DNA of 64,000 bases from Blastocladiella emersonii ATCC 22665. Its lineage: Eukaryota; Fungi; Blastocladiomycota. Where the stretch lies: contig JANHCV010000010.1 in the NCBI GenBank assembly GCA_025594325.1, positions 1,671,364-1,735,363 of the forward strand, read 5' to 3'. Under the pieces are notes generated by a model. That model saw only the letters and a program-made list of their open reading frames with translations, was not told the origin of the DNA and made no database searches. This document shows, piece by piece, positions 5,274 to 64,000 of the stretch; positions within the stretch are counted from its first letter, which is position 1; each line of letters opens with the position of its first letter. A program made the translations under genes and the position numbers.

Positions 5274-5391
5274 ACAATAATCGAGACCGAGCAGCGCGAC
5301 ATGCTGGGCTGGCCAGCGGGAGAACGAGGGCACGCCGGAAAGCGAGTAGCAGGACTGTGTGGCTTTGGCCGTGGCCCGAGAGAAATGTCAG

Positions 5392-5433
5392 TTTTGTCTT
5401 TTCTTTTTTGTTCTTTTTGTTTCTTTTCTTTTT
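5392..5433 (+). repeat. T-rich low-complexity tract
   Basis: ttttgtcttttcttttttgttctttttgtttcttttcttttt, lying between two possibly convergent small ORFs. Confidence 0.7.
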
Positions 5434-5494
5434 GTGTCAATCAATGCACCGATAGGCCTGATTCAGCGACGACCACGCGTTTGCTTTGGACTTG

Positions 5495-5800
5495 TCACAT
5501 CAGGATGTGCCTTGGGGAGCCGAGCAGCCAAAGACGGACGGAGGGATCTGCAGCAAGAGCCGCCTTGGCCGAAGTGGTGGGCGGGCACACGGGCGGGTCT
5601 TCTTCACGCCCAGAGGGGTTTGGGCCGTGGGAGTGCATCGAGTGCAAGCACTGCGTGCAGAAGTGGTCTTTGTTGATGAATTTAAGGGTGGCCCTGTGTT
5701 GGCCAAATGGACGTCGGACGCGTGCGCTCGCCTCGCGGGGCGGAGCGTCGGGAACGTTGAGCGGGTCGACCTCGGCGCACCCAGCGGCGTGAGAGAGCAA
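5495..5800 (-). CDS. Hypothetical small protein or fragment with a Cys/His cluster (KFINKDHFCTQCLHSMHSHG)
   Basis: Minus ORF of 101 aa. The HFCxxCxxxxH segment could be part of a Zn-binding motif. The overlapping + ORF 5486..5920 (EVVFVDEF) looks like its antisense shadow. No ATG start was established. Confidence 0.2.
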   Translation of the reverse strand: MLSHAAGCAEVDPLNVPDAPPREASARVRRPFGQHRATLKFINKDHFCTQCLHSMHSHGPNPSGREEDPPVCPPTTSAKAALAADPSVRLWLLGSPRHILM

Positions 5801-5845
5801 GCCGAGTCACCAGAGGGAGCGCGAAGCGCGCGTCTCGCCTGGCGT

Positions 5846-6565
5846 AGGGCCTATATATCACAGTATCGAACCAACAATATATCTGACAACGGAAATATAG
5901 TAAACCAGCTACGTGGATGATTGTCGTGCTACTCAAACAAAACCATACCCAAATCTATGACTTCCCACATGTCCAGCTGGTTGAGGACCCATAAATCGTA
6001 ACGTCAAAGCAACAATGTATCTGACCATGGGAATATAGTAAACGAGCCCCGGAGATAATTGTCATGGTACGCAAACAAAACCATACTCAAGTCTATGCCT
6101 TCCCACATGTCCAGCTGGTTGGGGATCCATAAATCCCAGTATCGAACCAACAAGATATCTGACCATTGGACTATATGTAACCGATCCCGTAGGTAATTGT
6201 CATGATACCCAAACAAAACCATATTCAAATCTTTCACATCCCGCATGTCCAGCTAGCCAGGGACCCATAAATCACAGTATCCAACCAACAAAGTATCTGA
6301 CCAAAGAAAGATCATAAACCAGCCACGCAGATAATTGTCATGGTATTCAAACAAAACCATACTCAAATCTTCGAATACCCGATGTCCAGGTGGGCAAGGG
6401 CCTATACATCACAGTGTTGAACCAACAAAGTATCTGACGATCGGGATGTATCAAACCGGCCATGCTGATAATTGTCATGGTACTCAAACATAATCATAGT
6501 CAAGTCTTCGAATATCCTCACGTCCACGTGGGCAAGGACCCAAAGCGCCAGGTATCCAAATCTAC
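5846..6565. repeat. Edge block of five 138-bp monomers plus a degenerate partial monomer; the first monomer is unique to the array edge
   Basis: The anchor aaacaaaaccata (or a variant) begins at 5935, 6073, 6211, 6349 and 6486. Positions 5850-5949 differ from the corresponding internal monomer (about 8974-9073). Confidence 0.95.
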
Positions 6566-6655
6566 CCCGTTGTGCACACTCTCCATTATCCAAGTCTGTC
6601 ATCCTACAATTTTGGAACCCGTCGGCAAAGCTCACGGTCCAATCAACGAACAACA

Positions 6656-6747
6656 GCCAACCTGCCAACCTGGCTACCTACCTGCCTACCTGCCTAGCTG
6701 GCTATCTGCCTACCTGCAAACCTGCCAACCTGCCCTACCTGCTAACC
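6656..6747. repeat. Degenerate (CCTG/CCTA/CCAA)n tract, in every unit
   Basis: gccaacctgccaacctggctacctacctgcctacctgcctagctggctatctgcctacctgcaaacctgccaacctgccctacctgctaacc. Confidence 0.9.
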
Positions 6748-6830
6748 AAACACACACACCGCCTCGCAAGTCCTTGTGGGCCCGCGCTCTCTGGTTGCCG
6801 TCCCAGCCAACAAAGGAATGAATGATGAGC

Positions 6831-6895
6831 CCTGGCAGCCTGGCAGCCTGCCACACTGACAGCCTGGCAGCCTGCCACACTGACAGCCTGACAGC
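6831..6895. repeat. Two copies of a 24-bp minisatellite (gcagcctgccacactgacagcctg) with 8-bp cctggcag sub-repeats, in every unit
   Basis: Copies at 6843-6866 and 6867-6890. One copy is missing in unit 19 (about 63072-63096). Confidence 0.95.
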
Positions 6896-7660
6896 GCCCA
6901 CCCAGTAGTTATTAGCTACCTCGTATGTCGTCTGAGAGGGGTTCAGCAGTCAATATACGACTGGTCTCCTCCTGGCTGGCAGCTCTGCTGTCCACTCCAA
7001 GTCCTGCATGATGATGGGCCAAGGAGGGTTACGAGCAGCTCCTCTGTCTATCCGCGTGAAACCACTCACCCGCTGACGGATGTACACCACGCACCGTGCA
7101 GCGCGCACAGCGCACAGCGCCCAACGCACCACGCGCTGCGCACACGGCGCAAACGGCCACCCTGGTGACACGCACACTCGCATGAACGGCAGGCATGCAA
7201 GGCGTCCTGAACTCAACGATGATATATCGTCTATGTCTGCTCGCTCCAACGGGTGCGCCTGCCTGCCCTCCCTGTGCCATGGATTGATTGATTCATGTCC
7301 AGTGCTGCCCCCATGCTTGCTTTCATGGCCGCGGGGTCCGTCAGGGCGCCTTGCAATGGGTGCGCCAACCCCTGTTGCCAGCCATGTGGCAAGAAACACC
7401 ACAGCACCTGCGTCGCCCTGGCCACCGTACCTTGCAAACAGCGTAGCAGCCGTACTGCTTCAGAGGGCTGCAGAGGGCTGGCTGCGGAGGGCTGAGGCGG
7501 CAGGGCTCCTCCTGCAGGAGACAGTACTGGGGCCAAGGTGTTAGTGCTAGGGACTACTAACTGAATGGTGAATGACCCACACACCACATGCTCCTGGCAG
7601 GAGTGCGTGTGGGCGCGTGGGCCTGTGTCCGTGCGTGCCTGGATTAGTCCTCCATCACAA

Positions 7661-7710
7661 GTGACCAAGGTGACCAAGGTGACCAAGGTGACCAAGGTGA
7701 CCAAGGTGAC
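7661..7710. repeat. Perfect 9-bp tandem repeat (GTGACCAAG)5 GTGAC, in every unit
   Basis: Directly visible. It translates as VTKVTKVTK in the ORF track for 18 units and is visible at about 63867 in unit 19. Confidence 0.98.
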
Positions 7711-7844
7711 ATGCAAGCACCAAGTTAGAGCGGCGGGGCAGCCATGGAAAGAAGGGCACAGGTACAAACTACCGTACCCTGGCCGCGGCCACTTGTCGCA
7801 GAACAGCCCTGCATGGCTCAGGACGCGGCGGGCGTTGGAGACAG

Positions 7845-7875
7845 GGTAGGTAGGTAGGTAGCAGCAGCAGCAGCA
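7845..7875. repeat. Compound microsatellite (GGTA)4(GCA)5, in every unit that reaches this position
   Basis: ggtaggtaggtaggtagcagcagcagcagca. Confidence 0.95.
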
Positions 7876-8283
7876 AGGAGCAGGACCTGGCTGGCAAACA
7901 ACACAAGTGAAGGCGTGCGTGATGGAGTGAGAGAGTGTTGAATGAATGGATGGGTGGATGCGATGCAGACCAGCATACGTGTCGTGCGTCGTCCGGATTG
8001 GTCGGCGACCACCCGCCAATCCTGCGGCATGGCTGTGGGGGCGGCAGTGGTGGTAGTGGAGCTAGAGTGGTGTCGTGGGGCTGGTGGGGTCCCCTCTCCT
8101 TCCTGTCTCGCCTAGGTGGGTGGGCGGACGTAGCGCGCATGCGGGCGGGCAAGGTAGGAACGTTGTTCAAGCAATGGATCATGTACTTTATGGCATGTGA
8201 TCTGCAAGACAGGGAGGGGGAGCGACTGTGTCTAATTTTGACCGAGGGACCTTGCTGCAGCCAACGTCTGGCCCAATCCGACC

Positions 8284-9665
8284 CTCCACAAATCGCAACA
8301 TGCACGAAACAAATTAGCTGACGTTTGGGATGTACCAAACCAGCCACGTAGATAACTTTCATGGTACTCAAACAAGACCATACTCAAATCTTTGACTTCC
8401 TGCATGTCCAGCTAGCCAGGCTTCTGTAAATCACATTAATGACGCAACAAAATATCTGGCCATAAGAATATTGTAAACCAGCCACTCTGGCAATTGTCAT
8501 GGCACTCAAACAAAACCATATTCAAATCTTCGACTTCCCGCATGCCCATGTGGGCAAGGACCTATAAATCACAGTATCGAACCAACAAAATATCTGACCA
8601 TAGAAACATAGTATACCAGCCACGAGGACAATTGTCATGGTACTCAAACAAAACCATATTCAAATCTTTGACTATTCACATGTCTAGCTGGTTGGCGACC
8701 CATAAATCGTAACATTGGAGCAACAAAATATCTGACCACGGAAATACAGTAAACAAGCCCCGGAGATAATTGTCATGGTTCTCAAACAAAACCATATTCA
8801 GATCTTTGAATACCCCATGTCCAGGTGGTTGGGGGCCCAGAAATCGTAACATCGAACCAACAAAATATTTGACCATAGAAATATACTAAACCAGCCACGT
8901 ACGTAATTGTCGCGTTACTTAAACAAAACCATACTCAAAACTTTGACTTCCCGCATGTTCACCTAGCCAGGTACCCATAAATCACAGTATCGAGCCAACA
9001 AAAGATCTGACAATGGAAATATAGTAAACCGGCCGCGGAGAGAATTCTCATGGTACTCAAATGAAACCATACTCAAATCTATGACTTCCCACATGTCCAG
9101 CTGGTTGAGGACCCATAAATCGTAACGTCAAAGCAACAATGTACCTGACCATGGGAATATAGTAAACGAGCCCCGGAGATAATTGTCATGGTACGCAAAC
9201 AAAACCATACTCAAGTCTATGCCTTCCCACATGTCCAGCTGGTTGGGGATCCATAAATCCCAGTATCGAACCAACAAGATATCTGACCATTGGACTATAT
9301 GTAACCGATCCCGTAGGTAATTGTCATGATACCCAAACAAAACCATATTCAAATCTTTCACATCCCGCATGTCCAGCTAGCCAGGGACCCATAAATCACA
9401 GTATCCAACCAACAAAGTATCTGACCAAAGAAAGATCATAAACCAGCCACGCAGATAATTGTCATGGTATTCAAACAAAACCATACTCAAATCTTCGAAT
9501 ACCCGATGTCCAGGTGGGCAAGGGCCTATACATCACAGTGTTGAACCAACAAAGTATCTGACGATCGGGATGTATCAAACCGGCCATGCTGATAATTGTC
9601 ATGGTACTCAAACATAATCATAGTCAAGTCTTCGAATATCCTCACGTCCACGTGGGCAAGGACCC
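8284..9665. repeat. Block of ten diverged 138/137-bp monomers (representative; 18 complete blocks in the window)
   Basis: The anchor begins at 8370, 8508, 8646, 8784, 8921, 9059, 9197, 9335, 9473 and 9610 (spacing 138, twice 137). Approximate consensus: cccataaatcacagtatcgaaccaacaaaatatctgaccatagaaatatagtaaaccagccacgtagataattgtcatggtactcaaacaaaaccatattcaaatctttgacttcccgcatgtccagctggttgggga. Confidence 0.97.
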
Positions 9666-12600
9666 AAAGCGCCAGGTATCCAAATCTACCCCGTTGTGCA
9701 CACTCTCCATTATCCAAGTCTGTCATCCTACAATTTTGGAACCCGTCGGCAAAGCTCACGGTCCAATCAACGAACAACAGCCAACATGCCAACCTGGCTA
9801 CCTACCTGCCTACCTGCCTAGCTGGCTATCTGCCTACCTGCAAACCTGCCAACCTGCCCTACCTGCTAACCAAACACACACACCGCCTCGCAAGTCCTTG
9901 TGGGCCCGCGCTCTCTGGTTGCCGTCCCAGCCAACAAAGGAATGAATGATGAGCCCTGGCAGCCTGGCAGCCTGCCACACTGACAGCCTGGCAGCCTGCC
10001 ACACTGACAGCCTGACAGCGCCCACCCAGTAGTTATTAGCTACCTCGTATGTCGTCTGAGAGGGGTTCAGCAGTCAATATACGACTGGTCTCCTCCTGGC
10101 TGGCAGCTCTGCTGTCCACTCCAAGTCCTGCATGATGATGGGCCAAGGAGGGTTACGAGCAGCTCCTCTGTCTATCCGCGTGAAACCACTCACCCGCTGA
10201 CGGATGTACACCACGCACCGTGCAGCGCGCACAGCGCACAGCGCCCAACGCACCACGCGCTGCGCACACGGCGCAAACGGCCACCCTGGTGACACGCACA
10301 CTCGCATGAACGGCAGGCATGCAAGGCGTCCTGAACTCAACGATGATATATCGTCTAGGTCTGCTCGCTCCAACGGGTGCGCCTGCCTGCCCTCCCTGTG
10401 CCATGGATTGATTGATTCATGTCCAGTGCTGCCCCCATGCTTGCTTTCATGGCCGCGGGGTCCGTCAGGACGCCTTGCAATGGGTGCGCCAACCCCTGTT
10501 GCCAGCCATGTGGCAAGAAACACCACAGCACCTGCGTCGCCCTGGCCACCGTACCTTGCAAACAGCGTAGCAGCCGTACTGCTTCAGAGGGCTGCAGAGG
10601 GCTGGCTGCGGAGGGCTGAGGCGGCAGGGCTCCTCCTGCAGGAGACAGTGCTGGGGCCAAGGAGTTAGTGCTAGGGACTACTAACTGAATGGTGAATGAC
10701 CCACACACCACATGCTCCTGGCAGGAGTGCGTGTGGGCGCGTGGGCCTGTGTCCGTGCGTGCCTGGATTAGTCCTCCATCACAAGTGACCAAGGTGACCA
10801 AGGTGACCAAGGTGACCAAGGTGACCAAGGTGACATGCAAGCACCAAGTTAGAGCGGCGGGGCAGCCATGGAAAGAAGGGCACAGGTACAAACTACCGTA
10901 CCCTGGCCGCGGCCACTAGTCGCAGAACAGCCCTGCATGGCTCAGGACGCGGCGGGCGTTGGAGACAGGGTAGGTAGGTAGGTAGCAGCAGCAGCAGCAA
11001 GGAGCAGGACCTGGCTGGCAAACAACACAAGTGAAGGCGTGCGTGATGGAGTAAGAGAGTGTTGAATGAATGGATGGGTGGATGCGATGCAGACCAGCAT
11101 ACGTGTCGTGCGTCGTCCGGATTGGTCGGCGACCACCCGCCAATCCTGCGGCATGGCTGTGGGGGCGGCAGTGGTGGTAGTGGAGCTAGAGTGGTGTCGT
11201 GGGGCTGGTGGGGTCCCCTCTCCTTCCTGTCTCGCCTAGGTGGGTGGGCGGACGTAGCGCGCATGCGGGCGGGCAAGGTAGGAACGTTGTTCAAGCAATG
11301 GATCATGTACTTTATGGCATGTGATCTGCAAGACAGGGAGGGGGAGCGACTGTGTCTAATTTTGACCGAGGGACCTTGCTGCAGCCAACGTCTGGCCCAA
11401 TCCGACCCTCCACAAATCGCAACATGCACGAAACAAATTAGCTGACGTTTGGGATGTACCAAACCAGCCACGTAGATAATTTTCATGGTACTCAAACAAG
11501 ACCATACTCAAATCTTTGACTTCCTGCATGTCCAGCTAGCCAGGCTTCTGTAAATCACATTAATGACGCAACAAAATATCTGGCCATAAGAATATTGTAA
11601 ACCAGCCACTCTGGCAATTGTCATGGCACTCAAACAAAACCATATTCAAATCTTCGACTTCCCGCATGCCCATGTGGGCAAGGACCTATAAATCACAGTA
11701 TCGAACCAACAAAATATCTGACCATAGAAACATAGTATACCAGCCACGAGGACAATTGTCATGGTACTCAAACAAAACCATATTCAAATCTTTGACTATT
11801 CACATGTCTAGCTGGTTGGCGACCCATAAATCGTAACATTGGAGCAACAAAATATCTGACCACGGAAATACAGTAAACAAGCCCCGGAGATAATTGTCAT
11901 GGTTCTCAAACAAAACCATATTCAGATCTTTGAATACCCCATGTCCAGGTGGTTGGGGGCCCAGAAATCGTAACATCGAACCAACAAAATATTTGACCAT
12001 AGAAATATACTAAACCAGCCACGTACGTAATTGTCGCGTTACTTAAACAAAACCATACTCAAAACTTTGACTTCCCGCATGTTCACCTAGCCAGGTACCC
12101 ATAAATCACAGTATCGAGCCAACAAAAGATCTGACAATGGAAATATAGTAAACCGGCCGCGGAGAGAATTCTCATGGTACTCAAATGAAACCATACTCAA
12201 ATCTATGACTTCCCACATGTCCAGCTGGTTGAGGACCCATAAATCGTAACGTCAAAGCAACAATGTATCTGACCATGGGAATATAGTAAACGAGCCCCGG
12301 AGATAATTGTCATGGTACGCAAACAAAACCATACTCAAGTCTATGCCTTCCCACATGTCCAGCTGGTTGGGGATCCATAAATCCCAGTATCGAACCAACA
12401 AGATATCTGACCATTGGACTATATGTAACCGATCCCGTAGGTAATTGTCATGATACCCAAACAAAACCATATTCAAATCTTTCACATCCCGCATGTCCAG
12501 CTAGCCAGGGACCCATAAATCACAGTATCCAACCAACAAAGTATCTGACCAAAGAAAGATCATAAACCAGCCACGCAGATAATTGTCATGGTATTCAAAC

Positions 12601-15600
12601 AAAACCATACTCAAATCTTCGAATACCCGATGTCCAGGTGGGCAAGGGCCTATACATCACAGTGTTGAACCAACAAAGTATCTGACGATCGGGATGTATC
12701 AAACCGGCCATGCTGATAATTGTCATGGTACTCAAACATAATCATAGTCAAGTCTTCGAATATCCTCACGTCCACGTGGGCAAGGACCCAAAGCGCCAGG
12801 TATCCAAATCTACCCCGTTGTGCACACTCTCCATTATCCAAGTCTGTCATCCTACAATTTTGGAACCCGTCGGCAAAGCTCACGGTCCAATCAACGAACA
12901 ACAGCCAACATGCCAACCTGGCTACCTACCTGCCTACCTGCCTAGCTGGCTATCTGCCTACCTGCAAACCTGCCAACCTGCCCTACCTGCTAACCAAACA
13001 CACACACCGCCTCGCAAGTCCTTGTGGGCCCGCGCTCTCTGGTTGCCGTCCCAGCCAACAAAGGAATGAATGATGAGCCCTGGCAGCCTGGCAGCCTGCC
13101 ACACTGACAGCCTGGCAGCCTGCCACACTGACAGCCTGACAGCGCCCACCCAGTAGTTATTAGCTACCTCGTATGTCGTCTGAGAGGGGTTCAGCAGTCA
13201 ATATACGACTGGTCTCCTCCTGGCTGGCAGCTCTGCTGTCCACTCCAAGTCCTGCATGATGATGGGCCAAGGAGGGTTACGAGCAGCTCCTCTGTCTATC
13301 CGCGTGAAACCACTCACCCGCTGACGGATGTACACCACGCACCGTGCAGCGCGCACAGCGCACAGCGCCCAACGCACCACGCGCTGCGCACACGGCGCAA
13401 ACGGCCACCCTGGTGACACGCACACTCGCATGAACGGCAGGCATGCAAGGCGTCCTGAACTCAACGATGATATATCGTCTAGGTCTGCTCGCTCCAACGG
13501 GTGCGCCTGCCTGCCCTCCCTGTGCCATGGATTGATTGATTCATGTCCAGTGCTGCCCCCATGCTTGCTTTCATGGCCGCGGGGTCCGTCAGGACGCCTT
13601 GCAATGGGTGCGCCAACCCCTGTTGCCAGCCATGTGGCAAGAAACACCACAGCACCTGCGTCGCCCTGGCCACCGTACCTTGCAAACAGCGTAGCAGCCG
13701 TACTGCTTCAGAGGGCTGCAGAGGGCTGGCTGCGGAGGGCTGAGGCGGCAGGGCTCCTCCTGCAGGAGACAGTGCTGGGGCCAAGGAGTTAGTGCTAGGG
13801 ACTACTAACTGAATGGTGAATGACCCACACACCACATGCTCCTGGCAGGAGTGCGTGTGGGCGCGTGGGCCTGTGTCCGTGCGTGCCTGGATTAGTCCTC
13901 CATCACAAGTGACCAAGGTGACCAAGGTGACCAAGGTGACCAAGGTGACCAAGGTGACATGCAAGCACCAAGTTAGAGCGGCGGGGCAGCCATGGAAAGA
14001 AGGGCACAGGTACAAACTACCGTACCCTGGCCGCGGCCACTTGTCGCAGAACAGCCCTGCATGGCTCAGGACGCGGCGGGCGTTGGAGACAGGGTAGGTA
14101 GGTAGGTAGCAGCAGCAGCAGCAAGGAGCAGGACCTGGCTGGCAAACAACACAAGTGAAGGCGTGCGTGATGGAGTGAGAGAGTGTTGAATGAATGGATG
14201 GGTGGATGCGATGCAGACCAGCATACGTGTCGTGCGTCGTCCGGATTGGTCGGCGACCACCCGCCAATCCTGCGGCATGGCTGTGGGGGCGGCAGTGGTG
14301 GTAGTGGAGCTAGAGTGGTGTCGTGGGGCTGGTGGGGTCCCCTCTCCTTCCTGTCTCGCCTAGGTGGGTGGGCGGACGTAGCGCGCATGCGGGCGGGCAA
14401 GGTAGGAACGTTGTTCAAGCAATGGATCATGTACTTTATGGCATGTGATCTGCAAGACAGGGAGGGGGAGCGACTGTGTCTAATTTTGACCGAGGGACCT
14501 TGCTGCAGCCAACGTCTGGCCCAATCCGACCCTCCACAAATCGCAACATGCACGAAACAAATTAGCTGACGTTTGGGATGTACCAAACCAGCCACGTAGA
14601 TAATTTTCATGGTACTCAAACAAGACCATACTCAAATCTTTGACTTCCTGCATGTCCAGCTAGCCAGGCTTCTGTAAATCACATTAATGACGCAACAAAA
14701 TATCTGGCCATAAGAATATTGTAAACCAGCCACTCTGGCAATTGTCATGGCACTCAAACAAAACCATATTCAAATCTTCGACTTCCCGCATGCCCATGTG
14801 GGCAAGGACCTATAAATCACAGTATCGAACCAACAAAATATCTGACCATAGAAACATAGTATACCAGCCACGAGGACAATTGTCATGGTACTCAAACAAA
14901 ACCATATTCAAATCTTTGACTATTCACATGTCTAGCTGGTTGGCGACCCATAAATCGTAACATTGGAGCAACAAAATATCTGACCACGGAAATACAGTAA
15001 ACAAGCCCCGGAGATAATTGTCATGGTTCTCAAACAAAACCATATTCAGATCTTTGAATACCCCATGTCCAGGTGGTTGGGGGCCCAGAAATCGTAACAT
15101 CGAACCAACAAAATATTTGACCATAGAAATATACTAAACCAGCCACGTACGTAATTGTCGCGTTACTTAAACAAAACCATACTCAAAACTTTGACTTCCC
15201 GCATGTTCACCTAGCCAGGTACCCATAAATCACAGTATCGAGCCAACAAAAGATCTGACAATGGAAATATAGTAAACCGGCCGCGGAGAGAATTCTCATG
15301 GTACTCAAATGAAACCATACTCAAATCTATGACTTCCCACATGTCCAGCTGGTTGAGGACCCATAAATCGTAACGTCAAAGCAACAATGTATCTGACCAT
15401 GGGAATATAGTAAACGAGCCCCGGAGATAATTGTCATGGTACGCAAACAAAACCATACTCAAGTCTATGCCTTCCCACATGTCCAGCTGGTTGGGGATCC
15501 ATAAATCCCAGTATCGAACCAACAAGATATCTGACCATTGGACTATATGTAACCGATCCCGTAGGTAATTGTCATGATACCCAAACAAAACCATATTCAA

Positions 15601-18600
15601 ATCTTTCACATCCCGCATGTCCAGCTAGCCAGGGACCCATAAATCACAGTATCCAACCAACAAAGTATCTGACCAAAGAAAGATCATAAACCAGCCACGC
15701 AGATAATTGTCATGGTATTCAAACAAAACCATACTCAAATCTTCGAATACCCGATGTCCAGGTGGGCAAGGGCCTATACATCACAGTGTTGAACCAACAA
15801 AGTATCTGACGATCGGGATGTATCAAACCGGCCATGCTGATAATTGTCATGGTACTCAAACATAATCATAGTCAAGTCTTCGAATATCCTCACGTCCACG
15901 TGGGCAAGGACCCAAAGCGCCAGGTATCCAAATCTACCCCGTTGTGCACACTCTCCATTATCCAAGTCTGTCATCCTACAATTTTGGAACCCGTCGGCAA
16001 AGCTCACGGTCCAATCAACGAACAACAGCCAACCTGCCAACCTGGCTACCTACCTGCCTACCTGCCTAGCTGGCTATCTGCCTACCTGCAAACCTGCCAA
16101 CCTGCCCTACCTGCTAACCAAACACACACACCGCCTCGCAAGTCCTTGTGGGCCCGCGCTCTCTGGTTGCCGTCCCAGCCAACAAAGGAATGAATGATGA
16201 GCCCTGGCAGCCTGGCAGCCTGCCACACTGACAGCCTGGCAGCCTGCCACACTGACAGCCTGACAGCGCCCACCCAGTAGTTATTAGCTACCTCGTATGT
16301 CGTCTGAGAGGGGTTCAGCAGTCAATATACGACTGGTCTCCTCCTGGCTGGCAGCTCTGCTGTCCACTCCAAGTCCTGCATGATGATGGGCCAAGGAGGG
16401 TTACGAGCAGCTCCTCTGTCTATCCGCGTGAAACCACTCACCCGCTGACGGATGTACACCACGCACCGTGCAGCGCGCACAGCGCACAGCGCCCAACGCA
16501 CCACGCGCTGCGCACACGGCGCAAACGGCCACCCTGGTGACACGCACACTCGCATGAACGGCAGGCATGCAAGGCGTCCTGAACTCAACGATGATATATC
16601 GTCTAGGTCTGCTCGCTCCAACGGGTGCGCCTGCCTGCCCTCCCTGTGCCATGGATTGATTGATTCATGTCCAGTGCTGCCCCCATGCTTGCTTTCATGG
16701 CCGCGGGGTCCGTCAGGACGCCTTGCAATGGGTGCGCCAACCCCTGTTGCCAGCCATGTGGCAAGAAACACCACAGCACCTGCGTCGCCCTGGCCACCGT
16801 ACCTTGCAAACAGCGTAGCAGCCGTACTGCTTCAGAGGGCTGCAGAGGGCTGGCTGCGGAGGGCTGAGGCGGCAGGGCTCCTCCTGCAGGAGACAGTGCT
16901 GGGGCCAAGGAGTTAGTGCTAGGGACTACTAACTGAATGGTGAATGACCCACACACCACATGCTCCTGGCAGGAGTGCGTGTGGGCGCGTGGGCCTGTGT
17001 CCGTGCGTGCCTGGATTAGTCCTCCATCACAAGTGACCAAGGTGACCAAGGTGACCAAGGTGACCAAGGTGACCAAGGTGACATGCAAGCACCAAGTTAG
17101 AGCGGCGGGGCAGCCATGGAAAGAAGGGCACAGGTGCAAACTACCGTACCCTGGCCGCGGCCACTTGTCGCAGAACAGCCCTGCATGGCTCAGGACGCGG
17201 CGGGCGTTGGAGACAGGGTAGGTAGGTAGGTAGCAGCAGCAGCAGCAAGGAGCAGGACCTGGCTGGCAAACAACACAAGTGAAGGCGTGCGTGATGGAGT
17301 GAGAGAGTGTTGAATGAATGGATGGGTGGATGCGATGCAGACCAGCATACGTGTCGTGCGTCGTCCGGATTGGTCGGCGACCACCCGCCAATCCTGCGGC
17401 ATGGCTGTGGGGGCGGCAGTGGTGGTAGTGGAGCTAGAGTGGTGTCGTGGGGCTGGTGGGGTCCCCTCTCCTTCCTGTCTCGCCTAGGTGGGTGGGCGGA
17501 CGTAGCGCGCATGCGGGCGGGCAAGGTAGGAACGTTGTTCAAGCAATGGATCATGTACTTTATGGCATGTGATCTGCAAGACAGGGAGGGGGAGCGACTG
17601 TGTCTAATTTTGACCGAGGGACCTTGCTGCAGCCAACGTCTGGCCCAATCCGACCCTCCACAAATCGCAACATGCACGAAACAAATTAGCTGACGTTTGG
17701 GATGTACCAAACCAGCCACGTAGATAATTTTCATGGTACTCAAACAAGACCATACTCAAATCTTTGACTTCCTGCATGTCCAGCTAGCCAGGCTTCTGTA
17801 AATCACATTAATGACGCAACAAAATATCTGGCCATAAGAATATTGTAAACCAGCCACTCTGGCAATTGTCATGGCACTCAAACAAAACCATATTCAAATC
17901 TTCGACTTCCCGCATGCCCATGTGGGCAAGGACCTATAAATCACAGTATCGAACCAACAAAATATCTGACCATAGAAACATAGTATACCAGCCACGAGGA
18001 CAATTGTCATGGTACTCAAACAAAACCATATTCAAATCTTTGACTATTCACATGTCTAGCTGGTTGGCGACCCATAAATCGTAACATTGGAGCAACAAAA
18101 TATCTGACCACGGAAATACAGTAAACAAGCCCCGGAGATAATTGTCATGGTTCTCAAACAAAACCATATTCAGATCTTTGAATACCCCATGTCCAGGTGG
18201 TTGGGGGCCCAGAAATCGTAACATCGAACCAACAAAATATTTGACCATAGAAATATACTAAACCAGCCACGTACGTAATTGTCGCGTTACTTAAACAAAA
18301 CCATACTCAAAACTTTGACTTCCCGCATGTTCACCTAGCCAGGTACCCATAAATCACAGTATCGAGCCAACAAAAGATCTGACAATGGAAATATAGTAAA
18401 CCGGCCGCGGAGAGAATTCTCATGGTACTCAAATGAAACCATACTCAAATCTATGACTTCCCACATGTCCAGCTGGTTGAGGACCCATAAATCGTAACGT
18501 CAAAGCAACAATGTATCTGACCATGGGAATATAGTAAACGAGCCCCGGAGATAATTGTCATGGTACGCAAACAAAACCATACTCAAGTCTATGCCTTCCC

Positions 18601-51600: not shown

Positions 51601-54600
51601 GCAGCAGCAAGGAGCAGGACCTGGCTGGCAAACAACACAAGTGAAGGCGTGCGTGATGGAGTGAGAGAGTGTTGAATGAATGGATGGGTGGATGCGATGC
51701 AGACCAGCATACGTGTCGTGCGTCGTCCGGATTGGTCGGCGACCACCCGCCAATCCTGCGGCATGGCTGTGGGGGCGGCAGTGGTGGTAGTGGAGCTAGA
51801 GTGGTGTCGTGGGGCTGGTGGGGTCCCCTCTCCTTCCTGTCTCGCCTAGGTGGGTGGGCGGACGTAGCGCGCATGCGGGCGGGCAAGGTAGGAACGTTGT
51901 TCAAGCAATGGATCATGTACTTTATGGCATGTGATCTGCAAGACAGGGAGGGGGAGCGACTGTGTCTAATTTTGACCGAGGGACCTTGCTGCAGCCAACG
52001 TCTGGCCCAATCCGACCCTCCACAAATCGCAACATGCACGAAACAAATTAGCTGACGTTTGGGATGTACCAAACCAGCCACGTAGATAATTTTCATGGTA
52101 CTCAAACAAGACCATACTCAAATCTTTGACTTCCTGCATGTCCAGCTAGCCAGGCTTCTGTAAATCACATTAATGACGCAACAAAATATCTGGCCATAAG
52201 AATATTGTAAACCAGCCACTCTGGCAATTGTCATGGCACTCAAACAAAACCATATTCAAATCTTCGACTTCCCGCATGCCCATGTGGGCAAGGACCTATA
52301 AATCACAGTATCGAACCAACAAAATATCTGACCATAGAAACATAGTATACCAGCCACGAGGACAATTGTCATGGTACTCAAACAAAACCATATTCAAATC
52401 TTTGACTATTCACATGTCTAGCTGGTTGGCGACCCATAAATCGTAACATTGGAGCAACAAAATATCTGACCACGGAAATACAGTAAACAAGCCCCGGAGA
52501 TAATTGTCATGGTTCTCAAACAAAACCATATTCAGATCTTTGAATACCCCATGTCCAGGTGGTTGGGGGCCCAGAAATCGTAACATCGAACCAACAAAAT
52601 ATTTGACCATAGAAATATACTAAACCAGCCACGTACGTAATTGTCGCGTTACTTAAACAAAACCATACTCAAAACTTTGACTTCCCGCATGTTCACCTAG
52701 CCAGGTACCCATAAATCACAGTATCGAGCCAACAAAAGATCTGACAATGGAAATATAGTAAACCGGCCGCGGAGAGAATTCTCATGGTACTCAAATGAAA
52801 CCATACTCAAATCTATGACTTCCCACATGTCCAGCTGGTTGAGGACCCATAAATCGTAACGTCAAAGCAACAATGTATCTGACCATGGGAATATAGTAAA
52901 CGAGCCCCGGAGATAATTGTCATGGTACGCAAACAAAACCATACTCAAGTCTATGCCTTCCCACATGTCCAGCTGGTTGGGGATCCATAAATCCCAGTAT
53001 CGAACCAACAAGATATCTGACCATTGGACTATATGTAACCGATCCCGTAGGTAATTGTCATGATACCCAAACAAAACCATATTCAAATCTTTCACATCCC
53101 GCATGTCCAGCTAGCCAGGGACCCATAAATCACAGTATCCAACCAACAAAGTATCTGACCAAAGAAAGATCATAAACCAGCCACGCAGATAATTGTCATG
53201 GTATTCAAACAAAACCATACTCAAATCTTCGAATACCCGATGTCCAGGTGGGCAAGGGCCTATACATCACAGTGTTGAACCAACAAAGTATCTGACGATC
53301 GGGATGTATCAAACCGGCCATGCTGATAATTGTCATGGTACTCAAACATAATCATAGTCAAGTCTTCGAATATCCTCACGTCCACGTGGGCAAGGACCCA
53401 AAGCGCCAGGTATCCAAATCTACCCCGTTGTGCACACTCTCCATTATCCAAGTCTGTCATCCTACAATTTTGGAACCCGTCGGCAAAGCTCACGGTCCAA
53501 TCAACGAACAACAGCCAACCTGCCAACCTGGCTACCTACCTGCCTACCTGCCTAGCTGGCTATCTGCCTACCTGCAAACCTGCCAACCTGCCCTACCTGC
53601 TAACCAAACACACACACCGCCTCGCAAGTCCTTGTGGGCCCGCGCTCTCTGGTTGCCGTCCCAGCCAACAAAGGAATGAATGATGAGCCCTGGCAGCCTG
53701 GCAGCCTGCCACACTGACAGCCTGGCAGCCTGCCACACTGACAGCCTGACAGCGCCCACCCAGTAGTTATTAGCTACCTCGTATGTCGTCTGAGAGGGGT
53801 TCAGCAGTCAATATACGACTGGTCTCCTCCTGGCTGGCAGCTCTGCTGTCCACTCCAAGTCCTGCATGATGATGGGCCAAGGAGGGTTACGAGCAGCTCC
53901 TCTGTCTATCCGCGTGAAACCACTCACCCGCTGACGGATGTACACCACGCACCGTGCAGCGCGCACAGCGCACAGCGCCCAACGCACCACGCGCTGCGCA
54001 CACGGCGCAAACGGCCACCCTGGTGACACGCACACTCGCATGAACGGCAGGCATGCAAGGCGTCCTGAACTCAACGATGATATATCGTCTAGGTCTGCTC
54101 GCTCCAACGGGTGCGCCTGCCTGCCCTCCCTGTGCCATGGATTGATTGATTCATGTCCAGTGCTGCCCCCATGCTTGCTTTCATGGCCGCGGGGTCCGTC
54201 AGGACGCCTTGCAATGGGTGCGCCAACCCCTGTTGCCAGCCATGTGGCAAGAAACACCACAGCACCTGCGTCGCCCTGGCCACCGTACCTTGCAAACAGC
54301 GTAGCAGCCGTACTGCTTCAGAGGGCTGCAGAGGGCTGGCTGCGGAGGGCTGAGGCGGCAGGGCTCCTCCTGCAGGAGACAGTGCTGGGGCCAAGGAGTT
54401 AGTGCTAGGGACTACTAACTGAATGGTGAATGACCCACACACCACATGCTCCTGGCAGGAGTGCGTGTGGGCGCGTGGGCCTGTGTCCGTGCGTGCCTGG
54501 ATTAGTCCTCCATCACAAGTGACCAAGGTGACCAAGGTGACCAAGGTGACCAAGGTGACCAAGGTGACATGCAAGCACCAAGTTAGAGCGGCGGGGCAGC

Positions 54601-57600
54601 CATGGAAAGAAGGGCACAGGTACAAACTACCGTACCCTGGCCGCGGCCACTAGTCGCAGAACAGCCCTGCATGGCTCAGGACGCGGCGGGCGTTGGAGAC
54701 AGGGTAGGTAGGTAGGTAGCAGCAGCAGCAGCAAGGAGCAGGACCTGGCTGGCAAACAACACAAGTGAAGGCGTGCGTGATGGAGTGAGAGAGTGTTGAA
54801 TGAATGGATGGGTGGATGCGATGCAGACCAGCATACGTGTCGTGCGTCGTCCGGATTGGTCGGCGACCACCCGCCAATCCTGCGGCATGGCTGTGGGGGC
54901 GGCAGTGGTGGTAGTGGAGCTAGAGTGGTGTCGTGGGGCTGGTGGGGTCCCCTCTCCTTCCTGTCTCGCCTAGGTGGGTGGGCGGACGTAGCGCGCATGC
55001 GGGCGGGCAAGGTAGGAACGTTGTTCAAGCAATGGATCATGTACTTTATGGCATGTGATCTGCAAGACAGGGAGGGGGAGCGACTGTGTCTAATTTTGAC
55101 CGAGGGACCTTGCTGCAGCCAACGTCTGGCCCAATCCGACCCTCCACAAATCGCAACATGCACGAAACAAATTAGCTGACGTTTGGGATGTACCAAACCA
55201 GCCACGTAGATAATTTTCATGGTACTCAAACAAGACCATACTCAAATCTTTGACTTCCTGCATGTCCAGCTAGCCAGGCTTCTGTAAATCACATTAATGA
55301 CGCAACAAAATATCTGGCCATAAGAATATTGTAAACCAGCCACTCTGGCAATTGTCATGGCACTCAAACAAAACCATATTCAAATCTTCGACTTCCCGCA
55401 TGCCCATGTGGGCAAGGACCTATAAATCACAGTATCGAACCAACAAAATATCTGACCATAGAAACATAGTATACCAGCCACGAGGACAATTGTCATGGTA
55501 CTCAAACAAAACCATATTCAAATCTTTGACTATTCACATGTCTAGCTGGTTGGCGACCCATAAATCGTAACATTGGAGCAACAAAATATCTGACCACGGA
55601 AATACAGTAAACAAGCCCCGGAGATAATTGTCATGGTTCTCAAACAAAACCATATTCAGATCTTTGAATACCCCATGTCCAGGTGGTTGGGGGCCCAGAA
55701 ATCGTAACATCGAACCAACAAAATATTTGACCATAGAAATATACTAAACCAGCCACGTACGTAATTGTCGCGTTACTTAAACAAAACCATACTCAAAACT
55801 TTGACTTCCCGCATGTTCACCTAGCCAGGTACCCATAAATCACAGTATCGAGCCAACAAAAGATCTGACAATGGAAATATAGTAAACCGGCCGCGGAGAG
55901 AATTCTCATGGTACTCAAATGAAACCATACTCAAATCTATGACTTCCCACATGTCCAGCTGGTTGAGGACCCATAAATCGTAACGTCAAAGCAACAATGT
56001 ATCTGACCATGGGAATATAGTAAACGAGCCCCGGAGATAATTGTCATGGTACGCAAACAAAACCATACTCAAGTCTATGCCTTCCCACATGTCCAGCTGG
56101 TTGGGGATCCATAAATCCCAGTATCGAACCAACAAGATATCTGACCATTGGACTATATGTAACCGATCCCGTAGGTAATTGTCATGATACCCAAACAAAA
56201 CCATATTCAAATCTTTCACATCCCGCATGTCCAGCTAGCCAGGGACCCATAAATCACAGTATCCAACCAACAAAGTATCTGACCAAAGAAAGATCATAAA
56301 CCAGCCACGCAGATAATTGTCATGGTATTCAAACAAAACCATACTCAAATCTTCGAATACCCGATGTCCAGGTGGGCAAGGGCCTATACATCACAGTGTT
56401 GAACCAACAAAGTATCTGACGATCGGGATGTATCAAACCGGCCATGCTGATAATTGTCATGGTACTCAAACATAATCATAGTCAAGTCTTCGAATATCCT
56501 CACGTCCACGTGGGCAAGGACCCAAAGCGCCAGGTATCCAAATCTACCCCGTTGTGCACACTCTCCATTATCCAAGTCTGTCATCCTACAATTTTGGAAC
56601 CCGTCGGCAAAGCTCACGGTCCAATCAACGAACAACAGCCAACCTGCCAACCTGGCTACCTACCTGCCTACCTGCCTAGCTGGCTATCTGCCTACCTGCA
56701 AACCTGCCAACCTGCCCTACCTGCTAACCAAACACACACACCGCCTCGCAAGTCCTTGTGGGCCCGCGCTCTCTGGTTGCCGTCCCAGCCAACAAAGGAA
56801 TGAATGATGAGCCCTGGCAGCCTGGCAGCCTGCCACACTGACAGCCTGGCAGCCTGCCACACTGACAGCCTGACAGCGCCCACCCAGTAGTTATTAGCTA
56901 CCTCGTATGTCGTCTGAGAGGGGTTCAGCAGTCAATATACGACTGGTCTCCTCCTGGCTGGCAGCTCTGCTGTCCACTCCAAGTCCTGCATGATGATGGG
57001 CCAAGGAGGGTTACGAGCAGCTCCTCTGTCTATCCGCGTGAAACCACTCACCCGCTGACGGATGTACACCACGCACCGTGCAGCGCGCACAGCGCACAGC
57101 GCCCAACGCACCACGCGCTGCGCACACGGCGCAAACGGCCACCCTGGTGACACGCACACTCGCATGAACGGCAGGCATGCAAGGCGTCCTGAACTCAACG
57201 ATGATATATCGTCTAGGTCTGCTCGCTCCAACGGGTGCGCCTGCCTGCCCTCCCTGTGCCATGGATTGATTGATTCATGTCCAGTGCTGCCCCCATGCTT
57301 GCTTTCATGGCCGCGGGGTCCGTCAGGACGCCTTGCAATGGGTGCGCCAACCCCTGTTGCCAGCCATGTGGCAAGAAACACCACAGCACCTGCGTCGCCC
57401 TGGCCACCGTACCTTGCAAACAGCGTAGCAGCCGTACTGCTTCAGAGGGCTGCAGAGGGCTGGCTGCGGAGGGCTGAGGCGGCAGGGCTCCTCCTGCAGG
57501 AGACAGTACTGGGGCCAAGGAGTTAGTGCTAGGGACTACTAACTGAATGGTGAATGACCCACACACCACATGCTCCTGGCAGGAGTGCGTGTGGGCGCGT

Positions 57601-60600
57601 GGGCCTGTGTCCGTGCGTGCCTGGATTAGTCCTCCATCACAAGTGACCAAGGTGACCAAGGTGACCAAGGTGACCAAGGTGACCAAGGTGACATGCAAGC
57701 ACCAAGTTAGAGCGGCGGGGCAGCCATGGAAAGAAGGGCACAGGTACAAACTACCGTACCCTGGCCGCGGCCACTAGTCGCAGAACAGCCCTGCATGGCT
57801 CAGGACGCGGCGGGCGTTGGAGACAGGGTAGGTAGGTAGGTAGCAGCAGCAGCAGCAAGGAGCAGGACCTGGCTGGCAAACAACACAAGTGAAGGCGTGC
57901 GTGATGGAGTGAGAGAGTGTTGAATGAATGGATGGGTGGATGCGATGCAGACCAGCATACGTGTCGTGCGTCGTCCGGATTGGTCGGCGACCACCCGCCA
58001 ATCCTGCGGCATGGCTGTGGGGGCGGCAGTGGTGGTAGTGGAGCTAGAGTGGTGTCGTGGGGCTGGTGGGGTCCCCTCTCCTTCCTGTCTCGCCTAGGTG
58101 GGTGGGCGGACGTAGCGCGCATGCGGGCGGGCAAGGTAGGAACGTTGTTCAAGCAATGGATCATGTACTTTATGGCATGTGATCTGCAAGACAGGGAGGG
58201 GGAGCGACTGTGTCTAATTTTGACCGAGGGACCTTGCTGCAGCCAACGTCTGGCCCAATCCGACCCTCCACAAATCGCAACATGCACGAAACAAATTAGC
58301 TGACGTTTGGGATGTACCAAACCAGCCACGTAGATAATTTTCATGGTACTCAAACAAGACCATACTCAAATCTTTGACTTCCTGCATGTCCAGCTAGCCA
58401 GGCTTCTGTAAATCACATTAATGACGCAACAAAATATCTGGCCATAAAAATATTGTAAACCAGCCACTCTGGCAATTGTCATGGCACTCAAACAAAACCA
58501 TATTCAAATCTTCGACTTCCCGCATGCCCATGTGGGCAAGAACCTATAAATCACAGTATCGAACCAACAAAATATCTGACCATAGAAACATAGTATACCA
58601 GCCACGAGGACAATTGTCATGGTACTCAAACAAAACCATATTCAAATCTTTGACTATTCACATGTCTAGCTGGTTGGCGACCCATAAATCGTAACATTGG
58701 AGCAACAAAATATCTGACCACGGAAATACAGTAAACAAGCCCCGGAGATAATTGTCATGGTTCTCAAACAAAACCATATTCAGATCTTTGAATACCCCAT
58801 GTCCAGGTGGTTGGGGGCCCAGAAATCGTAACATCGAACCAACAAAATATTTGACCATAGAAATATACTAAACCAGCCACGTACGTAATTGTCGCGTTAC
58901 TTAAACAAAACCATACTCAAAACTTTGACTTCCCGCATGTTCACCTAGCCAGGTACCCATAAATCACAGTATCGAGCCAACAAAAGATCTGACAATGGAA
59001 ATATAGTAAACCGGCCGCGGAGAGAATTCTCATGGTACTCAAATGAAACCATACTCAAATCTATGACTTCCCACATGTCCAGCTGGTTGAGGACCCATAA
59101 ATCGTAACGTCAAAGCAACAATGTATCTGACCATGGGAATATAGTAAACGAGCCCCGGAGATAATTGTCATGGTACGCAAACAAAACCATACTCAAGTCT
59201 ATGCCTTCCCACATGTCCAGCTGGTTGGGGATCCATAAATCCCAGTATCGAACCAACAAGATATCTGACCATTGGACTATATGTAACCGATCCCGTAGGT
59301 AATTGTCATGATACCCAAACAAAACCATATTCAAATCTTTCACATCCCGCATGTCCAGCTAGCCAGGGACCCATAAATCACAGTATCCAACCAACAAAGT
59401 ATCTGACCAAAGAAAGATCATAAACCAGCCACGCAGATAATTGTCATGGTATTCAAACAAAACCATACTCAAATCTTCGAATACCCGATGTCCAGGTGGG
59501 CAAGGGCCTATACATCACAGTGTTGAACCAACAAAGTATCTGACGATCGGGATGTATCAAACCGGCCATGCTGATAATTGTCATGGTACTCAAACATAAT
59601 CATAGTCAAGTCTTCGAATATCCTCACGTCCACGTGGGCAAGGACCCAAAGCGCCAGGTATCCAAATCTACCCCGTTGTGCACACTCTCCATTATCCAAG
59701 TCTGTCATCCTACAATTTTGGAACCCGTCGGCAAAGCTCACGGTCCAATCAACGAACAACAGCCAACCTGCCAACCTGGCTACCTACCTGCCTACCTGCC
59801 TAGCTGGCTATCTGCCTACCTGCAAACCTGCCAACCTGCCCTACCTGCTAACCAAACACACACACCGCCTCGCAAGTCCTTGTGGGCCCGCGCTCTCTGG
59901 TTGCCGTCCCAGCCAACAAAGGAATGAATGATGAGCCCTGGCAGCCTGGCAGCCTGCCACACTGACAGCCTGGCAGCCTGCCACACTGACAGCCTGACAG
60001 CGCCCACCCAGTAGTTATTAGCTACCTCGTATGTCGTCTGAGAGGGGTTCAGCAGTCAATATACGACTGGTCTCCTCCTGGCTGGCAGCTCTGCTGTCCA
60101 CTCCAAGTCCTGCATGATGATGGGCCAAGGAGGGTTACGAGCAGCTCCTCTGTCTATCCGCGTGAAACCACTCACCCGCTGACGGATGTACACCACGCAC
60201 CGTGCAGCGCGCACAGCGCACAGCGCCCAACGCACCACGCGCTGCGCACACGGCGCAAACGGCCACCCTGGTGACACGCACACTCGCATGAACGGCAGGC
60301 ATGCAAGGCGTCCTGAACTCAACGATGATATATCGTCTAGGTCTGCTCGCTCCAACGGGTGCGCCTGCCTGCCCTCCCTGTGCCATGGATTGATTGATTC
60401 ATGTCCAGTGCTGCCCCCATGCTTGCTTTCATGGCCGCGGGGTCCGTCAGGACGCCTTGCAATGGGTGCGCCAACCCCTGTTGCCAGCCATGTGGCAAGA
60501 AACACCACAGCACCTGCGTCGCCCTGGCCACCGTACCTTGCAAACAGCGTAGCAGCCGTACTGCTTCAGAGGGCTGCAGAGGGCTGGCTGCGGAGGGCTG

Positions 60601-63600
60601 AGGCGGCAGGGCTCCTCCTGCAGGAGACAGTGCTGGGGCCAAGGAGTTAGTGCTAGGGACTACTAACTGAATGGTGAATGACCCACACACCACATGCTCC
60701 TGGCAGGAGTGCGTGTGGGCGCGTGGGCCTGTGTCCGTGCGTGCCTGGATTAGTCCTCCATCACAAGTGACCAAGGTGACCAAGGTGACCAAGGTGACCA
60801 AGGTGACCAAGGTGACATGCAAGCACCAAGTTAGAGCGGCGGGGCAGCCATGGAAAGAAGGGCACAGGTACAAACTACCGTACCCTGGCCGCGGCCACTA
60901 GTCGCAGAACAGCCCTGCATGGCTCAGGACGCGGCGGGCGTTGGAGACAGGGTAGGTAGGTAGGTAGCAGCAGCAGCAGCAAGGAGCAGGACCTGGCTGG
61001 CAAACAACACAAGTGAAGGCGTGCGTGATGGAGTGAGAGAGTGTTGAATGAATGGATGGGTGGATGCGATGCAGACCAGCATACGTGTCGTGCGTCGTCC
61101 GGATTGGTCGGCGACCACCCGCCAATCCTGCGGCATGGCTGTGGGGGCGGCAGTGGTGGTAGTGGAGCTAGAGTGGTGTCGTGGGGCTGGTGGGGTCCCC
61201 TCTCCTTCCTGTCTCGCCTAGGTGGGTGGGCGGACGTAGCGCGCATGCGGGCGGGCAAGGTAGGAACGTTGTTCAAGCAATGGATCATGTACTTTATGGC
61301 ATGTGATCTGCAAGACAGGGAGGGGGAGCGACTGTGTCTAATTTTGACCGAGGGACCTTGCTGCAGCCAACGTCTGGCCCAATCCGACCCTCCACAAATC
61401 GCAACATGCACGAAACAAATTAGCTGACGTTTGGGATGTACCAAACCAGCCACGTAGATAATTTTCATGGTACTCAAACAAGACCATACTCAAATCTTTG
61501 ACTTCCTGCATGTCCAGCTAGCCAGGCTTCTGTAAATCACATTAATGACGCAACAAAATATCTGGCCATAAGAATATTGTAAACCAGCCACTCTGGCAAT
61601 TGTCATGGCACTCAAACAAAACCATATTCAAATCTTCGACTTCCCGCATGCCCATGTGGGCAAGGACCTATAAATCACAGTATCGAACCAACAAAATATC
61701 TGACCATAGAAACATAGTATACCAGCCACGAGGACAATTGTCATGGTACTCAAACAAAACCATATTCAAATCTTTGACTATTCACATGTCTAGCTGGTTG
61801 GCGACCCATAAATCGTAACATTGGAGCAACAAAATATCTGACCACGGAAATACAGTAAACAAGCCCCGGAGATAATTGTCATGGTTCTCAAACAAAACCA
61901 TATTCAGATCTTTGAATACCCCATGTCCAGGTGGTTGGGGGCCCAGAAATCGTAACATCGAACCAACAAAATATTTGACCATAGAAATATACTAAACCAG
62001 CCACGTACGTAATTGTCGCGTTACTTAAACAAAACCATACTCAAAACTTTGACTTCCCGCATGTTCACCTAGCCAGGTACCCATAAATCACAGTATCGAG
62101 CCAACAAAAGATCTGACAATGGAAATATAGTAAACCGGCCGCGGAGAGAATTCTCATGGTACTCAAATGAAACCATACTCAAATCTATGACTTCCCACAT
62201 GTCCAGCTGGTTGAGGACCCATAAATCGTAACGTCAAAGCAACAATGTATCTGACCATGGGAATATAGTAAACGAGCCCCGGAGATAATTGTCATGGTAC
62301 GCAAACAAAACCATACTCAAGTCTATGCCTTCCCACATGTCCAGCTGGTTGGGGATCCATAAATCCCAGTATCGAACCAACAAGATATCTGACCATTGGA
62401 CTATATGTAACCGATCCCGTAGGTAATTGTCATGATACCCAAACAAAACCATATTCAAATCTTTCACATCCCGCATGTCCAGCTAGCCAGGGACCCATAA
62501 ATCACAGTATCCAACCAACAAAGTATCTGACCAAAGAAAGATCATAAACCAGCCACGCAGATAATTGTCATGGTATTCAAACAAAACCATACTCAAATCT
62601 TCGAATACCCGATGTCCAGGTGGGCAAGGGCCTATACATCACAGTGTTGAACCAACAAAGTATCTGACGATCGGGATGTATCAAACCGGCCATGCTGATA
62701 ATTGTCATGGTACTCAAACATAATCATAGTCAAGTCTTCGAATATCCTCACGTCCACGTGGGCAAGGACCCAAAGCGCCAGGTATCCAAATCTACCCCGT
62801 TGTGCACACTCTCCATTATCCAAGTCTGTCATCCTACAATTTTGGAACCCGTCGGCAAAGCTCACGGTCCAATCAACGAACAACAGCCAACCTGCCAACC
62901 TGGCTACCTACCTGCCTACCTGCCTAGCTGGCTATCTGCCTACCTGCAAACCTGCCAACCTGCCCTACCTGCTAACCAAACACACACACCGCCTCGCAAG
63001 TCCTTGTGGGCCCGCGCTCTCTGGTTGCCGTCCCAGCCAACAAAGGAATGAATGATGAGCCCTGGCAGCCTGGCAGCCTGCCACACTGACAGCCTGACAG
63101 CGCCCACCCAGTAGTTATTAGCTACCTCGTATGTCGTCTGAGAGGGGTTCAGCAGTCAATATACGACTGGTCTCCTCCTGGCTGGCAGCTCTGCTGTCCA
63201 CTCCAAGTCCTGCATGATGATGGGCCAAGGAGGGTTACGAGCAGCTCCTCTGTCTATCCGCGTGAAACCACTCACCCGCTGACGGATGTACACCACGCAC
63301 CGTGCAGCGCGCACAGCGCACAGCGCCCAACGCACCACGCGCTGCGCACACGGCGCAAACGGCCACCCTGGTGACACGCACACTCGCATGAACGGCAGGC
63401 ATGCAAGGCGTCCTGAACTCAACGATGATATATCGTCTAGGTCTGCTCGCTCCAACGGGTGCGCCTGCCTGCCCTCCCTGTGCCATGGATTGATTGATTC
63501 ATGTCCAGTGCTGCCCCCATGCTTGCTTTCATGGCCGCGGGGTCCGTCAGGACGCCTTGCAATGGGTGCGCCAACCCCTGTTGCCAGCCATGTGGCAAGA

Positions 63601-64000
63601 AACACCACAGCACCTGCGTCGCCCTGGCCACCGTACCTTGCAAACAGCGTAGCAGCCGTACTGCTTCAGAGGGCTGCAGAGGGCTGGCTGCGGAGGGCTG
63701 AGGCGGCAGGGCTCCTCCTGCAGGAGACAGTACTGGGGCCAAGGAGTTAGTGCTAGGGACTACTAACTGAATGGTGAATGACCCACACACCACATGCTCC
63801 TGGCAGGAGTGCGTGTGGGCGCGTGGGCCTGTGTCCGTGCGTGCCTGGATTAGTCCTCCATCACAAGTGACCAAGGTGACCAAGGTGACCAAGGTGACCA
63901 AGGTGACCAAGGTGACATGCAAGCACCAAGTTAGAGCGGCGGGGCAGCCATGGAAAGAAGGGCACAGGTACAAACTACCGTACCCTGGCCGCGGCCACTA

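Follow-up and report, generated by a model that had tools for sequence, protein, structure and literature searches.

In primate alpha-satellite, roughly nucleosome-sized monomers diverged by 20–30% are combined into higher-order units that are >99% identical. These units are chromosome-specific, draw on a shared monomer family and carry a short conserved box, and the arrays have divergent edge units and edge retroelements. The array described here, in the blastoclad fungus Blastocladiella emersonii ATCC 22665, resembles alpha-satellite in each of these features. It differs in its fungal host, in a monomer of 138 bp (vs 171 bp), in units that are 43% monomeric and in array lengths of 0.1–0.3 Mb (vs megabases). 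The chromosome-specific centromeric satellites of potato are also alike, with near-identical ∼1–5-kb units that each occupy one chromosome and are in some cases retroelement-derived. However, the potato repeats are not known to be related to one another, whereas the Blastocladiella arrays share one monomer core. Human D4Z4 and DXZ4 have composite, partly GC-rich units of 3.0–3.3 kb in long homogeneous arrays with heterochromatin marks. Unlike the Blastocladiella arrays, each is restricted to one or two loci in the genome, and neither is known to have a shared nucleosome-sized monomer.

In fungi, the centromeres described or proposed so far (clusters of retroelements in Cryptococcus and, as proposed, in Allomyces; the mosaic type in Mucor) are likewise gene-free repeat regions with retroelements at or beside them. 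Such centromeres occur once per chromosome, and the present arrays once per array-bearing contig or contig pair among the matches listed. The fungal centromeres described or proposed are transposon clusters or short AT-rich stretches, whereas here the repeat is a homogeneous tandem array. A 2026 centromere atlas of 325 species reported no satellite architecture in 49 fungi, blastoclads not being among the 49, and proposed that fungi are perhaps unable to keep satellite arrays. This agrees with the statement in an earlier reading of this DNA (the sequence-only reading) that no centromere of the satellite or higher-order-repeat type is described in the lineage. Satellites are never mentioned in a 2020 review of fungal genome architecture that refers to centromeres 43 times. 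In Allomyces, which belongs to the same phylum, clusters of LTR elements have been proposed as centromeres. The word "centromere" is absent from the B. emersonii genome paper (PMC9730499), and we found no literature on Blastocladiella karyotype or kinetochores.

The window, meaning the whole 64,000-nt stretch analysed (C2:1671364-1735363), comes from an assembly of 32.65 Mb in 21 contigs. From position 5846 to position 64000, it contains 18.6 units of 3124 bp, arranged head-to-tail with >99.8% identity. The features of the window, in window positions, are:

1268 to 4458, plus strand: intact Sec5 (exocyst) gene made up of five exon-sized open frames, the nearest ordinary gene on this side of the array (Pfam PF15469, matched piecewise over profile positions 2-837)
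4880 to 5031, plus strand: inverted fragment of the border retroelement (90% identity to C5:208898-209049, opposite strand)
5036 to 5827, minus strand: 5′-truncated copy of the retroelement 3′ end, its cut end touching the array (90% identity to the far-border element, C5:206730-207541)
5846 to 7660, plus strand: truncated first unit at the array edge, which opens inside the monomer block and has five monomers (comparison with an inner unit)
7661 to 63866, plus strand: 18 full units, 3124 bp long in 16 cases, with single units of 3122 and 3100 bp (from the spacing of the anchors and an alignment of the units)
14585 to 15920, plus strand: example monomer block, in which two subtypes make up nine full monomers (138/137 bp) and a partial one (repeat and monomer analysis)
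14878 to 14906, plus strand: the conserved 29-nt core box as it occurs in one monomer, with ATGGT-N11-ACCAT inside it (column conservation)
15921 to 17708, plus strand: example GC-rich non-monomer part with 8-, 9- and 24-bp microsatellites, non-coding (no Pfam or Rfam match)
63867 to 64000, plus strand: opening of the following unit; C2 terminates at unit column 134 (BLAST of contig ends against the unit)

Tandem Repeats Finder reported a 138-bp period (9.4 copies, 77% matches) that recurs each 3124 bp from 5846 to the window end, together with an identical microsatellite set in each unit of the window array. Base identity at a lag of 3124 was 94% with indels not yet allowed for, compared with 26–29% at neighbouring lags. 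The 18 complete units of the window array were excised at the (GTGACCAAG)5 anchor and aligned; 17 of them showed 0–7 differences over 3124 positions, and the remaining unit was without one copy of a 24-bp minisatellite. Per unit there are nine full monomers (138/137 bp) and a partial one, with a mutual identity of 72–82%, and the two monomer subtypes are in part ordered as a 413-bp trimer. The best-conserved part of the monomer is the 29-nt core box, with a column conservation of 94% vs 86% overall.

These results reproduce much of the sequence-only reading. Its count of about 185 monomers was matched exactly, since the window holds 185, including five from the truncated first unit. Its description of diverged monomers inside near-identical units held (72–82% vs >99.8%), as did that of an AT-rich monomer block and a GC-rich spacer in one unit, with 42% GC in the monomer block and 59% in the other 1.8 kb. 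For its two-level higher-order repeat, the nesting of 138-bp monomers in 3124-bp units stood, and a pure higher-order repeat did not: monomers account for 1.34 kb of the 3.12-kb unit (∼43%), and the other 57% is unrelated GC-rich sequence with microsatellites. Therefore, the repeat is a composite macrosatellite. In alpha-satellite terms, it has diverged monomers with near-identical and chromosome-specific units, and it departs from that model in that the unit is not made wholly of monomers.

The array extends beyond the window. Contig C2 stops at the window end, and C5 opens with further units of the array in the same orientation. When the contig ends were compared with the unit by BLAST, the last C2 base mapped to unit column 134 and the first C5 base to column 135, a phase match with a chance of ∼1 in 3000. 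In addition, a variant at unit column 3014 is found on both sides of the break, in the final unit of C2 and the opening units of C5. The exact phase and the variant haplotype across the break demonstrate that the C2 and C5 parts are one array. Two markers from the non-monomer part had exactly 85 matches each, 19 on C2 and 66 on C5, and none elsewhere in the genome. The assembled array (C2:1677209 to the contig end, then C5:1-206729) thus comprises 85 units over ∼265 kb with >99.8% identity and no genes, i.e. the long tandem array of near-identical units expected of a centromeric satellite. Unit column 134, the last base before the contig break, is a variable position with T or A, and this suggests a single path divided by the assembler at a variant, with no true gap.

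The published assembly was built from HiFi reads of about 10.5 kb (PMC9730499), so the unit number may be wrong, and the assembly may lack further units where the contig breaks. Such reads are too short to span the array, and a contig breaks inside it, as might be expected if the array were an assembly artefact. Against this, variation along the array is ordered. Only 17 variant events were seen in 39 sampled units over ∼190 kb, the variants occur in blocks common to neighbouring units, and length variants of 3100, 3124 and 3148 bp, which reflect the copy number of a 24-bp repeat, are intermingled in an orderly manner. At the array edge, 24 of 2154 positions differ between the truncated first unit and an inner unit, compared with two between two inner units. 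More divergent edge units are the pattern of arrays homogenised by unequal exchange.

Alternatively, the array could be a tandem array of RNA or protein genes, since the unit has open frames of 150–262 aa and an Sm-site-like motif. Searching Rfam at gathering score over the whole window gave no family, searching one unit at an E-value of 1 gave nothing of note, and there was no tRNA in the window; hence the units have no recognisable RNA gene (rDNA, 5S, snRNA or spliced leader). An Sm-type small RNA, considered because of the motif, was rejected, as it had no Rfam support and the motif region is found in this array alone. The 150–262 aa open frames of the GC-rich part had no Pfam match and an equal GC content at the three codon positions, unlike the nearby DAHP synthase gene, and the longest is shortened to 178 aa in most units. 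A protein-coding reading of the open frames was therefore rejected. Taken as a whole, an explanation by artefact or by a gene array is highly improbable.

The sequence-only reading had the GC-rich spacer keeping its CpGs. This was not the case: CpG observed/expected was 0.62 in the GC-rich part, compared with 1.0–1.2 in the flanks. It was 0.71 in the monomers, and TpG and CpA were in excess in the unit. The CpG depletion fits cytosine methylation of the whole unit, past or present.

We then considered the position of the array on its chromosome. The assembly has an unusual telomere motif, (AAACCT)n (PMC9730499). Telomere repeats of this type are assembled at the starts of two contigs only (C2:16-868 and C11:1-95); the complementary repeat was not found at any contig's end, and the canonical TTAGGG repeat had no match. 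An isolated internal 18-nt match to the telomere motif lies at C11:558148. The array starts at C2:1677209, 1.68 Mb away from the C2 telomere, and is followed on its other side by 1.17 Mb of C5. This chromosome-internal position rules out a subtelomeric repeat. A second reverse-transcriptase family, 45–48% identical to the element at the array border described below, was found at C2:2736, C5:1372407, C6:4972, C21:3971 and C17:33260, i.e. 3–5 kb from the termini of four contigs and 33 kb inside on C17. This family may represent a retroelement associated with chromosome ends. Its copy at C5:1372407 hints that the far end of C5 is also near a chromosome end, and that the array would then lie at 54–62% of a 3.1-Mb chromosome.

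Confinement of the monomer to this one locus, with centromeres elsewhere, would have counted against the centromere proposed in the sequence-only reading. We therefore looked at the monomer core across the genome, where the 29-nt core had 2226 matches at ≤3 mismatches, with 761 expected from the C2/C5 array. A reversed-pattern control for this core had no match in the genome. Another 29-mer, which comes from the monomer consensus but does not occur in the C2/C5 array, had 157 exact matches. The matches were periodic and marked out arrays on at least seven further contigs, one for each contig among the matches listed:

C4:464-39240, minus strand: core array with a period of 2766 or 2790 bp
C7:990719-1065669, minus strand: core array with a period of 2766 or 2790 bp
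C6:1225418 to at least 1253676, minus strand: core array with a period of 2562-2578 bp
C9:165033 to at least 217749, plus strand: core array with a period of 2641-4035 bp
C10:158662 to at least 212394, plus strand: core array with a period of 3311-3362 bp
C11:2817824-2841157, minus strand: core array with a period of 3328-3335 bp
C17:2061383-2176778, plus strand: core array with a period of about 4151 bp

These arrays are known by the coordinates of pattern matches, from which their composition is deduced, and the matches listed reach up to C17. Period and strand suggest that C7 pairs with C4, and C11 with the reverse of C10. On C11, the telomere repeat is at the contig start, 2.8 Mb from the array. 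A metagenome scan for the 29-nt core gave no match. A bacterial promoter scan of the array only recovered the core box and was set aside as meaningless in a eukaryote. Since the core is common to the arrays and the non-monomer markers are restricted to one of them, the arrays form a family with a shared monomer and chromosome-specific units. The C2/C5 array is a chromosome-specific member of this genome-wide blastoclad satellite family.

Such a family could in principle be heterochromatic macrosatellite DNA of the D4Z4/DXZ4 kind, silenced and selfish or structural, with the true centromeres elsewhere. The kb-sized, composite, partly GC-rich and CpG-depleted unit would suit this explanation, as would the fact that the fungal centromeres so far described are no satellites. 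However, a single array per array-bearing contig among the matches listed, with one common conserved monomer core, argues against it, and a one-per-chromosome pattern is not known from macrosatellites. The array also lies far from the telomere wherever a telomere is assembled. We consider a non-centromeric macrosatellite unlikely, although it is the strongest of the alternatives.

The borders of the arrays have a common feature. On the C5 side, the C2/C5 array stops at unit column 343 and is followed directly by the 3′ end of a minus-strand element with reverse transcriptase and RNase H domains. Ten copies of this element have 94–97% identity and all start at one terminal base; no second copy was present within 10 kb, and the element is therefore of the non-LTR type. 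Most placeable array borders adjoin the 3′ end of this one retroelement family. Its 3′ terminus lies beside the core arrays on C4, C5, C7, C11 and C17 and also before the C9 array, and diverged copies precede the arrays on C7 and C10. Copies of 95–97% identity at C19:32682, C16:433, C20:1789733 and C21:1731076 have no array among the matches listed, and suggest that further arrays lie near these copies. The C2-side border element, by comparison with that on C5, is opposite in facing and truncated on its 5′ side.

The arrays might accordingly be by-products of retroelements, with a non-LTR element carrying or seeding the satellite at its 3′ end (e.g. by read-through copying) before amplification. 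In favour of such an origin, the true 3′ terminus of the element directly adjoins many arrays, and satellites that arose from retroelement repeats are known in plants (PMC7004042). A diverged copy of the element 3′ end also lies inside the C17 unit. This ∼4.15-kb unit (C17:2061383-2176778) includes it in two stretches, of 82% and 73% identity, so at least one array co-amplified retroelement sequence and monomers. In contrast, the C2/C5 array unit has no detectable similarity to the border retroelement, and the element at the left border faces the other way and is cut on its 5′ side. As an account of the arrays, a retroelement origin seems improbable; it could be compatible with either functional reading, centromeric or macrosatellite.

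We return to the centromeric reading. The balance of probability tips slightly towards the C2/C5 array being the centromere of the ∼3.1-Mb C2+C5 chromosome, or DNA directly next to that centromere. This reading draws on a homogeneous gene-free array, one per array-bearing contig or contig pair among the matches listed, in an internal position. It also draws on the shared monomer with its conserved box, the chromosome-specific units, the divergent edges and the border retroelement, and is further supported by the non-genic unit and the CpG depletion. A CENP-C-type cupin domain was found in a 1644-aa open frame at C16:633010-633261 (80.6 bits), and with such a gene present, a conventional inner kinetochore is likely. 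The centromere proposed in the sequence-only reading is partly supported: the monomer family forms separate arrays with their own unit lengths on at least seven other contigs, and the C2/C5 array is chromosome-internal. The likeness to alpha-satellite proved partial, given a unit that is 57% non-monomeric.

Some observations point the other way. Centromeric satellites do not usually contain GC-rich non-monomer DNA of the kind that makes up 57% of the unit here. Ordinary genes are close to the array, at 1.4 kb on the Sec5 side and 4.7 kb on the C5 side, where a cofilin-like gene is 4.7 kb and the DAHP synthase gene 5.8 kb past the border; there is consequently no broad heterochromatic zone around the array. 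By analogy, the LTR-element clusters proposed as centromeres in the related Allomyces would also weigh against a satellite centromere in Blastocladiella.

Under the centromeric reading, the units would be kept uniform by intrachromosomal gene conversion or unequal exchange. The AT-rich monomer blocks and the conserved box may be used by centromeric nucleosomes or by a sequence-specific protein, and the retroelement may preferentially insert into the chromatin of the array. Extending this to the genome, it is an even call whether every Blastocladiella chromosome has one true satellite centromere, with a shared 138-bp monomer, a putative protein-binding box, chromosome-specific composite units and a homing retroelement.

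The layout is that of the satellite centromeres of animals and plants, and is unreported in fungi. Satellite arrays that are both large and homogeneous are kept by at least one early-branching fungus, and their pattern is the one that centromeres would be expected to show. Should the centromeric reading be true, the fungal kingdom would have its first satellite-type centromere here. Binding of the arrays by CenH3 would mean that, within the groups sampled, satellite centromeres are not limited to animals and plants. It would also make B. emersonii, a laboratory model with a small genome, tractable for studying the origin and uniformity of higher-order repeats. The composite unit and the conserved box are direct experimental handles, and the CENP-C gene is a ready target for chromatin mapping.

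Base composition changes near the array. GC content is 55–58% over the last 5 kb before the array, compared with 64–65% at 10 kb distance, and third-position GC is 0.6–0.67 in Sec5 and the cofilin-like gene, compared with 0.94 in the DAHP synthase gene. This lowered GC may reflect reduced recombination there. Separately, six weak reverse-transcriptase matches (25–33% identity) occur within 10 kb at C6:337874-348195, which is an unrelated retroelement cluster or gene family.
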